From positions 27,156,001 to 27,220,000 of the forward strand of contig NC_043001.1 of assembly GCF_006345805.1 (NCBI RefSeq): a DNA stretch of 64,000 bases. The letters are read 5' to 3'. Position numbers and translations under genes: made by a program. This stretch comes from Octopus sinensis. Lineage: Eukaryota. Shown here piece by piece: positions 38,599 through 62,691 of this stretch (position 1 is its first letter; every line of letters begins with the position of its first letter). The notes under the pieces are model-generated. The model saw only the letters and a list, made by a program, of their open reading frames with translations. It had not been told where the DNA came from and ran no database searches.

Positions 38599-38674
38599 GA
38601 TGAAGTTACCAATTTTTATTCTTGTAATTCTTGTATTTGCATTGTGGCTGGATGAAATAGAAGCCAAGAAACAG
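38599..38674 (+). CDS. Micro-exon gene, first coding exon: signal peptide MKLPIFILVILVFALWLDEIEA + KKQ (ATG at 38600)
   Basis: TAACAG|G ATG ... CAG|GTAAGT. Basic n-region, 13-15-residue hydrophobic h-region, I-E-A cleavage motif. Phase-0 donor. Confidence 0.85.
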
Positions 38675-38924
38675 GTAAGTGATTGGAAGAATGTGTTCTA
38701 GAAGCAAAAAATATTATTAGTTGTAATGACAATGATGATGATGATGATGATGATGATGATGTGATTGGTAAATATCTTTGGTCAAATGTGATGTCTTTGA
38801 ATTTCTAATTTTTTCAAAATTATTTCTGTTCTGTAGTTTATTCTGTTGTACTTTATCACCCTTTCCATTCCATTTTGCTTTGTTGTTCTTTTTATGCAAC
38901 ATTTAAGGAAAAAAAATAATGACA

Positions 38925-39490
38925 ACATGTATATACATAGACACAAATGCATGTGTGTATATATATACACATACACACGTGCTCACACATATATTATATA
39001 TATATATATATATATTTATGTATGTATGTATGTATATATATATATATGTGTGTGTGTGTATATATATATATATATATATAATATATATATATATATGTAT
39101 ATATATATATATATATATATATATATATATATATAATATATATATATATATATATATATATAACATGTGTCTGTATGTGTGAGTACGTGTGTATGTGTAT
39201 ATATATACACACATGCATTTGTGTCTATGTATATACATGTGTGTGTGTATGTTATATATATATATATATATATAATATATATATATATATATATATATTA
39301 TATATATATATATATTATATATATATATATATATAATATATATATATATATAATATGTGTCTGTATGTGTGAGTACGTGTGTATGTGTATATATATACAC
39401 ACATGCATTTGTGTCTATGTATATACATGTGTGTGTGTATGTATATATATATATATATATAATATATATATATATATATATATATATATC
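38925..39490. repeat. Compound (TA)/(TG) tract containing one sense and two antisense copies of a roughly 70-bp unit
   Basis: 38925-38997 versus reverse-complement copies at about 39161-39243 and 39352-39433. Confidence 0.8.
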
Positions 39491-39610
39491 GACAATAAAT
39501 ATGTGAAAATACACAAAAACATTAAGAGAATTATAGTAATCTTTTAAGACAAATTAAAGAAACAAAAAAATTCTGTAATAATTCATTTAGATGCATCAAA
39601 CTATATATTA

Positions 39611-40114
39611 CATGGAAAAATGCAAGCTTAAAATGTAATATTCTTAAGATTATAAACCTGGAAAAGTACAGGACAAGTTATTGTACCTGTAAAAGTATAG
39701 GACAAGCTATTATTTCTAGTAAATAAAGAATAAGAAACTTTCTACTTAAAATATTGCAGTAAAGAATGCCAGTTCTAATTTATCATGCTTTAACAGTTCT
39801 CATCTTTTAAATTCATTGTACAAAACTGTTCAGCTAATTTGTAAGTTTGTCTAATTAATTTCTGTATTTAAGGTAGTAAATTAGTCAAATTTTACTTAAA
39901 TAAGTACAGTGTTATTTGTAAACTATAATAAAATAAGTTTTAATATTCAAATTTTAATTTTAGCTGCAGCTGCAATATTTTAAGTTTCTTATTCTTTACT
40001 TTACTAGAAGTAATAGCTTGTCCTATACTTTTACAGGTGTAACAACTTGTGTTGTGTACTTTTCCAGGTTTATCATCTTAAGAATATTACTTTTCATGCT
40101 TACATTTTTCCAGG
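39611..40114. repeat. Foldback element: about 150-bp inverted arms (39611-39759, 39970-40114) with a 210-bp spacer
   Basis: Arms align as reverse complements. Confidence 0.85.
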
Positions 40115-41435
40115 CATTGCTGTTATAAGATAATAATGTGTCAATTAATAATTTAAGATTTTACCTTGTAAAAATACTGAAAGATAATATTTCAATTTTT
40201 CCATGTAAGTGATGATAATATTTCAATTTTTTTCGTGTTTAATTTAAATATATGTTGTGATTGAATTATTTGATATTACCCATCCACACCAAATTAATGG
40301 CAGAGATTTTTACCATGTTGTGGATTGCACCATGGCTCACCAAAGGTTACAAACAAGATCCCAGAACCATCAGTTACCAGGCTCACCTTAAGTAACCTAA
40401 TTTTGCAATATTAAGAGGTCACAGGAATTCGTTCAACAAAAAAAAACATTTCCAATGATTCCAGGAATAGTGGGAGGACCCCCACCTCATTTTATCCATA
40501 CCAAAATAAGGGATTTGCAGCATATTATGAGGTCAGGGTACTTGATTCCATGCAAAAAATCAAATTTCCTGTTTTTTTTTTTCTTAGTGAAAATCATGCA
40601 GGTGTTTATATAGAAATTTACCATAATGTTGTTGTTATTTAGCTCCAAATCAACTCTGATACTTCAAACCTATCATCAAAGACATCCCAGCCTTCGGCAA
40701 ACCATCTTTTTAGGGATAATCTAGGACATTGCATACAATGGATGTGATTTAGATAGGGGGATACTTTGTCTGCTATTTTTAGCATGTCGAGGGACCAGGC
40801 AGAGGTTCTTTCGTTGGTTTGATTGCATGATGATATTTTTTTACACATATATGTAATATGTATATATACCATTGGCAGAAGTTAGAGAGTAAGTCAAAAG
40901 CTGAGAGTTTCGTGTATTGGCACTCATCAAACACAAATTTGTCCATTGTCACTCTGTAACTTCTGACAAAATAACTTCTAAAATACAAAATTTTGTCAAA
41001 ACATTAAGAATTAACCCTGTTCTATGTGTCAAATTCTACCAGTATCAGAAGTTTGAAAGTGATTAATTAAAAAAAATTAATTAAATAATTTGTACGTCAA
41101 AGTCGACCTCAGCAAAATTTGAACTCAAGAATATAAAGTCAGACGAAATACTGGTAAGTATTTCATGCAGCACTCTAAAACTATTAACAGTTTACAATTT
41201 AGTTGAGAAGTGAATTAGTGGTGAAGCTTGGAAGCTGCTACAATTGATGAAATGATGGACTTAAGAATATATTCAACCATCACCGTGGTTGAATGATCAG
41301 CCACTACCATGGTTGAATGATATATTTATGTACACACACACACACACACACATTACATACATATTTACATACATATATACATAGGTACATACATATATAC
41401 ATACATAGATATATAATAAATATCTAATTATAACC

Positions 41436-59614: not shown

Positions 59615-60014
59615 TTAAACATATGCCCATAGCAAACATATAAACAGCTTACACATGCAAATACTTATGAGAAACATACCAGCACGCAAGTAACATACAT
59701 GCTCACACAAACACAAATAAACATGCACAAACACAGCAATATTGCCAAAAGCAATATTTCGTTACTCTTGACAACAATGAATTCTGTGAACATACCTGAG
59801 ATGAACACTTCCATTTGGATTCATTCTATCTCTCATCTCTTGGACCAGGATTTTCTTGTTTGACATCTCCATGGCTGACATCTTCCCTCAGAGCCATACT
59901 TTGTTAACTCTAGCATACTCCAATGTTTGATTATGTCTTCCATACTATTACTTCTGTACCTTATTGAACCGTTACTTCTAACCACATACTATGTACCAGC
60001 CTTCACTCCTTAAC

Positions 60015-60276
60015 CTCTTGCCCCGTGCCAGTGGCATGTAAAAAGCACCAACCGATCGTGGTTGTTGACAGCCTCCCCTGGCACCTGTGACTACACTCTC
60101 GGAGTGGTTGGCGTTAGGAAGGGCATCCAGCTGTAGAAACACGGCCAGATCAGACTGGAGCCTGGTGCAGCCTCCTGGCTTCACAGACCCTGGTCAAACC
60201 GTCCAACCCATGCTAGCATGGAAAACGGACGTTAAATGATGATGATGATGATGATGATGATGATGATGATAATGAT
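60015..60276 (+). mobile_element. RTE-LINE 3' end with (GAT)n tail
   Basis: Same family as 41436-41845. Confidence 0.85.
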
Positions 60277-61963
60277 GAATCTAAACCCCCCATGCCAGAC
60301 TTTCAGGGCTTCTATGAACAGAAATCTCAAAAACATCCATCAATGAGAACAAACAACTCAATTACATTTAGCAGCACCATGATAACAAGGAAACAGTACT
60401 ACAGTAGACTCTCTTTGCACATGTACAGTACACAACTAAAATCCTCAGTGAGTGGATCTGGTACACGGAAACTGGAAGAAGCCCATTGTATGTATACATG
60501 TACATATTTGTGTGTGTATATGTGTCTGCGTTTGTTCCCCCCCCCCCACTGCCATCACTTGACAATCGATGCTGGTGTGTCTATGCCCTTGCAAACCAGT
60601 GGTTTAGCAAAAGAGACTGACAAAATAAGTACCAAGCTTACAAAGAATAAGTCCTGGGGTTGAGGCTATGAGACAATGTCTGATTAATTTGGAACAATGT
60701 GGATGAATAAACATTACATTTTTAACCACTGGTGCTGTCAGAGAGTAGTTCAATACAATTGCAGACAGAGACACCCTCCATTATAGCTGAGTTGATTGAA
60801 GCAACATAAAGTGAAGTACCTTACTTAAGGGCCCAATGTGCTGCTTAGTAAGGAATTCAACCAATGACCTTATGATCATGGGCCAAACACTCTGACCAGC
60901 AGACCACATGCCTTTATTCACTTAAGATAACCTCATGTCATAAACATTAGACATTTGTTTTAGAACCTGAAAAAATTTCAGCCCTGAGCAGTTGACCCCA
61001 CTGACAAACTTGAGTCAAAATTATTATTATAATATTGTTCATGTAACTTCTGCTAAGCAAACAGCCATCTGAGATCATATCCAAACAAAGGCCTTTGAAT
61101 AAGTGGCAAAGTCTTATTCACCAGCACACTGCATCTATTTCATAGTATGCATTTTTTTCCACTCTGTATCTTTTAGTTTACTAAAAGCCACTTCTTCCTT
61201 TGTCTACAAATTTTCATCAAAATCTTCATCCCAGACCATCTGATGACACTTCTGTTCTTATAGTAATCCCTTTAGTATCTCCCCACAACCCGACCTCACA
61301 CTAAGCACTTTTTCAATCCTTTCTTCTTTGGAAATTCAACCTACTGAAATTCCTTTTCCCATTTTTCCTACTGAAGTTCATCAATCACATCATTACTGCT
61401 TAGTCTAAGAAGGTTTACTCATATCAAAGCAATAAGTTCTGGTACTTCTCTGATAACTAATTTATGATAAAAAAATACACACAAACTCATTGAGGACTTA
61501 AATCTTTTGATACCAACCTGCTTGAAACCACAAGATACAAATTTACTGTTTTAAAGTGATCTAAAAACATTCTGTCAAGATATCATGTTAATTTTTGTTC
61601 TTTACACCAGCTTAATTATTTTACTAATTTTTTCTTAACACCATCAAAATTATTTTACTAATTTTTTCATTATTTTCAAAATTAATTGTAATAAAGGCAC
61701 TTTATTTCAAGAGAAATATGGGAATGAAAGGGTTAATAAATGATAGGCGTGATACACACAATAAAACCTATACATCAGAGACATTCAACAAGGGATTGGT
61801 TCTACTGAGAGAAGTAACTGGATGTTGTAATGGTCATACTTTCCCCAAAGGGATCAGCTGAGTGAAACAGCTGTTTCCAGAAACTAAGCCCAAGTCACAG
61901 ACTTGGAGCACCAAGAGTTTACCGCCAAACTTATATCACTAATTAATTATGAAAAGCGCTGCC

Positions 61964-62295
61964 TTGCCTGGCTTCTGTGCCGGTGGCACGTAAAAAGCAC
62001 CATCTGAACGTGACCGATGCCAGCGCCGCCTTGACTGGCTTCTGTGCCGGTGACACGTAAAAAGCACCAACCGATCATGGCCGCTGCCAGGCTCCCCTGG
62101 CACCTGTGCCGGTGGCACGTAAAAAGCACCCACTACACTCATGGAGTGGTTGGCGTTAGAAAGAGCATCCGGCTGTAGAAACTCTGCCAAATCAGACTGG
62201 AGCCTGGTGCAGCCTCCTGGCTTCCCAGACCCCAGTCGAACCGTCTGACCCATGCTAGCACAGAAAACAGACGTTAATCGATGATGATGATGATG
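61964..62295 (+). mobile_element. RTE-LINE 3' end with 3 internal repeats and (GAT)n tail
   Basis: Same family as 41436-41845. Confidence 0.85.
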
Positions 62296-62658
62296 AAACA
62301 TTCATTTAGTATACACCTGTTTCATATTTTGAAACCAAAACTGTTACCTAAGGTATCCTGATTATCAAAGTAGATTTTGATTGACTAAGACAGTGAAAAT
62401 TAAATGTCTTGGTTATGAGTAATACAGTTTTAGTAACACAATGAAAAGGATTGGTTTTTTGGGCTTGTTGTATGGTTGGTAGTTTGGTAAATGTAATTAA
62501 AACAAAAGCACACACACACAAGCAAACAAATAAGCAAAATAACACCAATAAATTTACAAGCATGCAGCCAAATGTTCACACATATATTTAATATATTAAA
62601 GAATTTCTGAATTTTGGAGACCGGAATTCATTGCTAATTTCTTTTCTTATCATTCCAG

Positions 62659-62691
62659 TGTAATAAAAGGGGTCCCGCTCCAAACACAACG
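62659..62691 (+). CDS. Micro-exon gene, exon B' (33 nt): CNKRGPAPNTT
   Basis: TTTCTTTTCTTATCATTCCAG|TGT...ACG|GTAAGA. Phase 0/0. C1, K3, P8 and N9 align with exon B. Confidence 0.85.

Follow-up and report, generated by a model that had tools for sequence, protein, structure and literature searches.

Cys-initiated micro-exons at the probable 5' end of a mosaic serine protease gene in Octopus sinensis encode a cephalopod Cys-loop repeat

The micro-exon genes (MEGs) of schistosomes have a coding region formed mostly by micro-exons and give small products, and their families are apparently restricted to platyhelminths (PMC4350168). A related arrangement is found in VAL-6 of Schistosoma mansoni, where one part of the gene for a conventional domain protein is a MEG-like series of tiny symmetric exons (PMC4350168). 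Vertebrate neurotrypsin (PRSS12), a secreted serine protease of mosaic type, begins with an N-terminal region outside any domain, followed by kringle, SRCR and trypsin domains (PMC9616769). Here we describe five small exons located in a stretch of 64,000 nt of the Octopus sinensis genome (the window; chromosome contig NC_043001.1, referred to as C5, positions C5:27156001-27220000, in an assembly of 2.72 Gb and 13,516 contigs). A preliminary description, made from the letters of the window, had proposed that these exons form a MEG-like gene for a secreted cationic peptide. The analysis presented here favors a different reading, namely that the five exons very probably form the 5' end of a large gene whose product is a secreted mosaic serine protease, called 'svh-1-like', 'neurotrypsin-like' or 'corin-like' in databases. 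Four of these exons encode a small Cys-loop repeat.

The five exons are listed below with window positions, together with their orthologues in the loci of Octopus bimaculoides (L015) and Argonauta hians (L033), numbered relative to each locus.

38600-38674, plus strand: exon 1, 75 nt, start codon and predicted signal peptide (MKLPIFILVILVFALWLDEIEA) followed by KKQ; donor GTAAGT, phase 0 end; the 75 nt are kept in the orthologues L015:10001-10075 and L033:2335-2409
53974-54006, plus strand: exon 2, 33-nt 'loop' micro-exon, CSRLKGREKAK, first half of repeat unit 1; orthologues of 33 nt at L015:17898-17930 and L033:10001-10033
55644-55679, plus strand: exon 3, 36-nt 'linker' micro-exon, CMKENRSPNNKR, second Cys of unit 1 and linker; orthologues of 36 nt at L015:19068-19103 and L033:11392-11427
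59198-59230, plus strand: exon 4, 33-nt 'loop' micro-exon, CGGLRGRERAQ, first half of repeat unit 2 and a duplicate of exon 2; orthologues at L015:21688-21720 and L033:13724-13756
62659-62691, plus strand: exon 5, 33-nt micro-exon, CNKRGPAPNTT, second Cys of unit 2 and start of a Pro/Thr linker

The introns that separate these exons have 15299, 1637, 3518 and 3428 nt. All the acceptors consist of a pyrimidine tract followed by AG, all the donors read GTAAG, every junction is in phase 0, and exons 2 to 5 each open with a TGY (Cys) codon. The joined translation has 70 residues, and the 48 that follow the signal peptide include 16 K/R and 3 D/E. Apart from the pyrimidine tracts, these features had been reported in the preliminary description, and they were borne out by the sequence, including the recount of charged residues and the absence of a stop exon in the window; the positions of the five exons were also confirmed, except that exon 1 starts at 38600 and not at 38599. 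Inspection of exon 1 reveals the n/h/c layout of a signal peptide, which is conserved across four orthologues and paralogues; in every orthologue, position -3 is occupied by I and position -1 by A or S. Another in-frame ATG is present at 38582, 18 nt 5' of 38600 (MFTGNR-MKLP…), and the O. vulgaris models start there; O. bimaculoides has ATT in its place, and so it is the ATG at 38600 that is conserved as initiator. Between exons 2 and 4, 25 of 33 nt are identical (p<1e-5), from which it follows that the cassette is a duplicated two-exon unit.

The same structure was found in two other octopods. A protein search retrieved two O. bimaculoides entries, A0A0L8GXG4 (101 amino acids) and XP_014777501.1 (113 amino acids), with 78% identity over the whole peptide. 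At the O. bimaculoides locus the same exons and splice sites are present, and exon 5 has 39 nt instead of 33 owing to an in-frame indel of 6 nt. The locus of A. hians contains exons of 75, 33, 36, 33 and 33 nt, the internal ones all conforming to AG/TGY…/GTAAG in phase 0, with the signal exon 7.6 kb upstream and absent from the partial gene model of this species. The comparison of orthologous loci proposed in the preliminary description thus showed exons that are intact and in frame in both species. The ratio of nonsynonymous to synonymous substitution rates (dN/dS) of the micro-exons against Argonauta is 0.21-0.27, with dS of approx. 0.8-1.1, and this indicates that purifying selection acts on them.

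Chance splice-like motifs, i.e., pseudo-exons, would be suggested by the small size of these exons and by nothing else. The window was scanned for the pattern AG/TGY../GTAAG enclosing 33 or 36 nt without a stop in frame, where pyrimidines had to make up 70% or more of the preceding 20 nt. Four matches were obtained in the plus strand, and they are exons 2 to 5, whereas the minus strand gave none; the mean expected from 300 block shuffles is 0.003 (0.19 when any first codon is allowed). Four matches observed against 0.003 expected, together with exon lengths, phases and Cys codons that are kept in three species and the dN/dS values mentioned above, make it extremely improbable that these are pseudo-exons.

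The gene continues beyond the end of the window. By mapping the 113-residue protein of O. bimaculoides onto the window and the 60 kb downstream, a sixth exon and a short terminal exon were located; the first SRCR exon of the protease lies further on in the same strand.

C5:27221407-27221492, plus strand: exon 6, 86 nt, PTPEPVTEENNVTFARAAFYEPLGHSNI and the two bases CG; phase 2 end at a GTAAG donor
C5:27221873-27221923, plus strand: alternative terminal exon, RLPFNEYLLKYINVTAM and a stop codon, 380 nt past exon 6
C5:27223615-27223752, plus strand: first SRCR exon, 2.1 kb past exon 6

Exon 6 is 2.7 kb past exon 5 and 1.4 kb beyond the window end. It finishes in phase 2 with …ATCCG/gtaag, and the SRCR acceptor ttgcag/G CTT GTT GGT completes the split Arg codon to give R-LVGNTSF. 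In O. sinensis the later protease exons are colinear, in the same strand and downstream of the first SRCR exon. With exon 6 predicted to splice in phase into the SRCR exon, the proposal of a stand-alone MEG-like gene was not supported, while the splice model, the signal-type exon 1 and the symmetric Cys-initiated micro-exons on which it was built were.

Evidence that both parts belong to one coding sequence comes from other cephalopods. When the 113-residue protein was used in an exhaustive HMMER search of 1.84 billion representatives, the only matches were the protein itself and CAI9722756.1 of O. vulgaris, a 'serine protease svh-1-like' of 1211 amino acids that has an isoform of 1305 amino acids (CAI9722755.1). 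Residues 7-105 of both O. vulgaris isoforms correspond to the peptide through exon 6, and the sequence then continues as …HSNIR-LVGNTSFYNAGLISIYRNNSWGYVCDD… into the SRCR domain. The O. vulgaris annotation was made with Iso-Seq, RNA-seq, PASA and EVM (PMC10700109). In the 1305-residue isoform, Pfam detects three SRCR domains, Lectin_C, Kringle, seven LDLa and Trypsin. The Gnomon model of Argonauta, GAB1602923.1 (1308 amino acids, 5'-partial), reads CAHLRGKQKLV-CLKEARKSNNRR-CAGLRGKERAK-CMKRGPPQNNK and goes directly into the SRCR domain and the protease; in this species the equivalent of exon 6 has 71 nt and also ends in phase 2, followed by the SRCR exon. In decapodiforms, Logan contigs of 4.05-4.3 kb (runs SRR5319790, SRR5319791 and SRR24189504) contain uninterrupted open reading frames of 1285 and 1371 amino acids, in which the signal peptide is followed by 5 and 5-6 copies of the Cys motif and then by '…IYEPLGNDRIRL.G' plus SRCR. 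These contigs are too compact for a genomic copy and were therefore taken as spliced RNA-seq assemblies. The contig cluster P0039/P0132 belongs to a cuttlefish, P0132 being identical to a Sepia pharaonis model over the first ~1,050 aligned residues except for one unit of 15 amino acids.

The motif [FY]EPLGxxxIR/L.G of exon 6 aligns with P[YFL]SG[EQ]x[IV]RLRG of chiton, gastropod and bivalve homologues, where it stands directly before the first SRCR domain; therefore, exon 6 is placed in the protease reading frame by homology and not by prediction alone. Support for a shared mRNA thus comes from the transcript-informed O. vulgaris models, the Argonauta Gnomon model, the decapodiform contigs, the phase fit and the junction motif. 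What was observed in this work comprises the exon structure, its conservation, purifying selection and the physical linkage to the protease reading frame in three other cephalopod lineages. An intron position shared before the first and second SRCR domains was also considered as an argument for linkage and was dropped, as the two positions differ: the exon of the second domain contains the 'IR' residues.

From N to C terminus, the protein would most likely be composed of the signal peptide, the Cys-loop repeats, a Pro/Thr linker, SRCR, C-type lectin, kringle, LDLa repeats, SRCR, LDLa, SRCR and trypsin. The O. sinensis isoforms contain the catalytic triad contexts …ISAAHCF…, …YDYDIALIKL… and …CQGDSGGPLVC…, and judging by the triad motifs (AAHC, DIAL, GDSGGP) the protease is predicted to be catalytically intact. 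In the downstream protease exons, which lie outside the window, the segment of the trypsin domain with the zymogen activation site and the His57 region exists in two versions, …SKIVNGQDAVYGRYPWQV… and …RITGGVRAIEGAYPWQA…; these distinguish isoforms in O. sinensis (X1 and X3) as well as in O. vulgaris, and they look like mutually exclusive exons.

The current annotations of this gene are incomplete in the region covered by the window. The RefSeq product XP_036359159.1 (LOC115211767, same chromosome) takes as its first residue an internal Met (MDNTDCKG), encoded by the second exon of the first SRCR domain, and is devoid of a signal peptide; with this start inside the domain, it lacks exactly what the window exons supply. 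The isoforms on scaffold C8849 begin in the same way. This scaffold (125,527 bp) is a 99.6% haplotig of positions 39198-69471, counted from the window start, and ends ~500 nt short of exon 1, which explains the truncation of its isoforms. On C5 itself there is a gap of 100 N some 86 kb beyond the window (C5:27305979-27306078), after which 17 kb of the gene (C5:27231716-27248976) recur as a 99.4% copy; both this copy with its gap and scaffold C8849 are assembly redundancy. In O. bimaculoides, the SRCR exon falls in an N-gap (L015:25200-25441), at whose edge the last colinear block ends, and it is for this reason that the 113-residue model appears as a separate gene.

The existence of this model bears on the possibility that the exons constitute a stand-alone micro-exon gene, whose small secreted cationic peptide of approx. 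113-115 amino acids would act alone, e.g., as an antimicrobial or signalling molecule. The product would be very basic, with a predicted signal peptide; it is represented in O. bimaculoides by XP_014777501.1 and by the UniProt entry A0A0L8GXG4, and the acceptor of the terminal exon, a pyrimidine tract followed by AG, is kept in both octopuses. Nevertheless, the terminal exon is conserved no better than the surrounding intron (31 of 40 aligned bases), an insertion in O. bimaculoides shifts its frame and the position of the stop, and neither Argonauta nor the octopus paralogue described below has an equivalent of it. Furthermore, the 101-residue model merely reads into the GTAAG donor of exon 6, the O. 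bimaculoides models stop where the assembly gap removes the SRCR exon, and the conserved motif of exon 6 belongs to the protease family. A search of the sequence beyond the window, suggested in the preliminary description, found this stop-bearing terminal exon, which is not conserved, and a splice-pattern scan of the next 60 kb revealed neither further TGY-initiated phase-0 micro-exons nor a Cys-initiated terminal exon. A stand-alone gene is thus improbable; a minor truncated isoform of 113-115 amino acids is possible, but not a conserved product.

Regarding the segment encoded by the micro-exons of the protease gene, each repeat unit is formed by two exons, a 33-nt 'loop' exon encoding C-x2-L-x-G-[KR]-x-[KR]-x2 and a 'linker' exon of 33-39 nt that opens with the second Cys, so that the full motif is C-x2-L-x-G-[KR]-x-[KR]-x2-C. 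The residues C, L(+3), G(+5) and C(+11) are invariant over octopod and decapodiform units; copies in the decapodiform contigs were scored as C-x2-[LF]-x-G-x-x-[KR]-x2-C. Octopods have 2 units and decapodiforms 5-6, with linkers that are acidic or rich in His, and other molluscs have N-terminal segments rich in R/K without the Cys motif. Searching the six frames of the first 70 kb for C..[LFIMV].G.. returned exons 2 and 4 and one match without splice sites, and the DNA pattern of the loop exon was found across the whole genome only at this locus and its haplotig. Pfam, applied to the peptide and to the decapodiform repeat regions, gave sub-threshold noise only (ADAMTS_CR_2 with E=0.04; Toxin_2 with E>1), and a PDB sequence search found no match. 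These results agree with the preliminary description, which recognised no family for the peptide segment, and its attribution of the sequence to a cephalopod is supported too. The Cys-loop repeat appears, from these comparisons, to be restricted to cephalopods and previously undescribed. A helical hairpin similar to twin-Cx9C was considered for the two C-x10-C units and discarded, as it is unsupported by the models, by the odd copy numbers and by the long decapodiform linkers.

Located 68-79 kb upstream of the window, in the minus strand at C5:27077881-27088062, is a paralogue of the protease gene in head-to-head orientation, XP_036359157.1 ('atrial natriuretic peptide-converting enzyme-like'). 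This gene contains a related signal exon (MKLSIFVHVILVLPLFLNKIEANMQ) together with an exon similar to exon 6, but its 8-kb intron is devoid of micro-exons. The presence of matches at mirrored positions points to a large inverted duplication with its centre near C5:27.14-27.15 Mb.

For the protease gene, a series of contributions from the individual exons can be proposed. Exon 1 would supply the signal peptide; exons 2-5 are two duplicated pairs of symmetric micro-exons, each pair encoding one strongly basic unit and its linker; and exon 6 encodes the Pro/Thr linker and the EPLGxxxIR motif that would lead into the first SRCR domain. Each C-x10-C pair may close as a disulfide-bonded cationic loop. 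Tentatively, the repeat could be a cationic module, stapled by disulfides, through which the secreted protease is tethered to polyanions, e.g., sulfated glycans, mucus or matrix. The non-cephalopod molluscan homologues, with their basic N-terminal segments, would offer a parallel for this proposal, and vertebrate neurotrypsin, with its N-terminal region, a looser one. Given that the units are carried by phase-0 exons, their copy number could shift by exon duplication or loss. It is conceivable, albeit doubtful as a whole, that cephalopods have evolved at the N terminus of this protease a lineage-specific cationic Cys-loop repeat with each half-unit on its own phase-0 micro-exon, and a copy number that is evolvable (2 in octopods, 5-6 in decapodiforms, 0 in the paralogue) and perhaps tunable by skipping.

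Skipping of micro-exons, the means by which schistosome MEGs diversify secreted proteins, is central to another explanation, according to which the micro-exons would be a MEG-like diversifying cassette within the protease gene, giving isoforms with differing numbers of cationic loops. All the exons are in phase 0 and multiples of 3, hence any skip stays in frame, and models or paralogues without the cassette exist in Octopus and Sepia. In addition, the S. pharaonis models CAE1263504/5 lack exactly one Cys-bounded unit of 15 amino acids (CERDKNRGGHHGGDP) that is present in the RNA contig, the rest being 100% identical to P0132 over >1000 residues. However, exons of 45 nt are often missed by gene predictors, and the Sepia difference may be an annotation error; a skipped exon of 45 nt and an annotation miss explain it equally well. 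All four micro-exons are present in both O. vulgaris isoforms, and the 8-kb intron of the octopus paralogue is truly devoid of them, which points to loss rather than skipping. Overall, diversification of this kind seems rather unlikely; if true, the skippable cassette would be a MEG-like diversification device outside flatworms.

It was also considered that the N-terminal segment could be a processed pro-region, in which furin-type convertases cut at dibasic sites (NNKR/C, NKR/G) and free short disulfide-looped cationic peptides. In the three octopods the third Cys follows KR or RR; nevertheless, the residues found before the decapodiform units are '(S)NP' or 'DP' instead of a dibasic pair, so the repeat as such does not conserve these sites, and processing of this type is quite improbable.

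Returning to the favored reading, the 5' end of a mosaic protease gene with a tethering repeat, several observations weigh against it in whole or in part. The junctions in octopus are known from annotation models and sequence rather than from reads, and NCBI Gnomon gives a separate product of 113 amino acids in O. bimaculoides by way of the alternative terminal exon, which has a strong acceptor. Between the window species and O. bimaculoides, substitutions in the exons reach 13.4% versus approx. 7-8% in colinear intron blocks, and dN/dS is 0.68 for the whole coding sequence and 0.58 for the micro-exons, the numbers involved being small. This faster divergence of the exons was taken as rapid evolution and not as proof of positive selection, and it would also suit a fast-evolving secreted peptide. 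Two AlphaFold runs had low confidence (predicted local distance difference test scores of 61-67), with a short helix after each conserved Gly that continues through the second Cys, and Foldseek found nothing below E=4 in PDB. Finally, the analogy with neurotrypsin is loose, given that its heparin binding maps to the protease domain and not to the N-terminal region (PMC9616769).

The comparison with the systems mentioned at the beginning shows both likeness and difference. As in schistosome MEGs, there are tiny symmetric phase-0 exons, long introns and fast divergence between close species, and the first exon is predicted to encode a signal peptide and the product to be secreted. Unlike them, the four micro-exons account here for 135 nt of a coding sequence of at least ~3.9 kb, i.e., ~3% of the coding sequence of the 1305-residue orthologue, and for 39% even of the doubtful 115-residue isoform. 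There is no sequence relationship to MEGs, since the HMMER search of 1.84 billion representatives returned Octopus proteins only. The octopus gene is not a schistosome-type MEG but very probably a micro-exon cassette inside a neurotrypsin-like protease. The nearest structural analogy is VAL-6; this protein, however, belongs to the SCP/TAPS family instead of the mosaic serine proteases and comes from another phylum, and the octopus cassette is a duplicated N-terminal Cys-loop repeat.

With respect to neurotrypsin, the octopus protease likewise has SRCR and kringle domains upstream of a C-terminal trypsin domain, as seen in the Pfam domains of O. vulgaris and in the exons downstream of the window, and many of its database homologues are named neurotrypsin or neurotrypsin-like. 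The N-terminal region of neurotrypsin is proline-rich and without a Cys-loop repeat, whereas the octopus protein has additional C-lectin and LDLa domains and an SRCR domain in first position; the two are likened by domains and not by phylogeny. The domain order is the same in the SRCR-lectin-kringle-LDLa-trypsin proteases of oyster, chiton and gastropod, which also share the motif P-x-SG/LG-x3-[IV]R-L before the first SRCR domain and have R/K-rich N-terminal segments behind the signal peptide. These basic segments lack C-x2-L-x-G-[KR]-x-[KR]-x2-C, which is found only in cephalopods. A literature search on micro-exon genes in cephalopods and on the accessions involved retrieved nothing relevant.

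These results bear first on annotation. The window exons very probably give the missing secretory N terminus to LOC115211767, which now starts inside the SRCR domain without a signal peptide, and the annotation of O. bimaculoides splits the same 5' end off as an 'uncharacterized' protein of 113 amino acids. They also define an undescribed repeat, apparently restricted to cephalopods, with no counterpart in Pfam or PDB, whose layout of one exon per half-unit is a clean case of repeat expansion through micro-exon duplication. No evidence was obtained here for a MEG-type gene class in molluscs; the locus is most likely a lineage-specific micro-exon repeat that fronts an already known protease family.

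The introns between these exons are rich in microsatellites of the types (ATG)n, (TA)n, (ACAT)n and (CA)n, at positions 38720-39520, 41950-42170, 43290-43700, 47800-48750 and 56300-56500 of the window, and they contain many copies of repeats resembling short interspersed nuclear elements that end in (ATG)n. At 63091-64000, and running past the window end, there is an interspersed repeat with >100 copies in the genome at 94-99% identity, which is presumably a recently active transposable element. Remnants of mariner/Tc1-type transposases are present upstream of exon 1, at 35278-35757 in the plus strand and at 22755-23204 in the minus strand, with a Pfam match to Transposase_1 (E=3e-18) and a weak one to DDE_3 (E=0.006).

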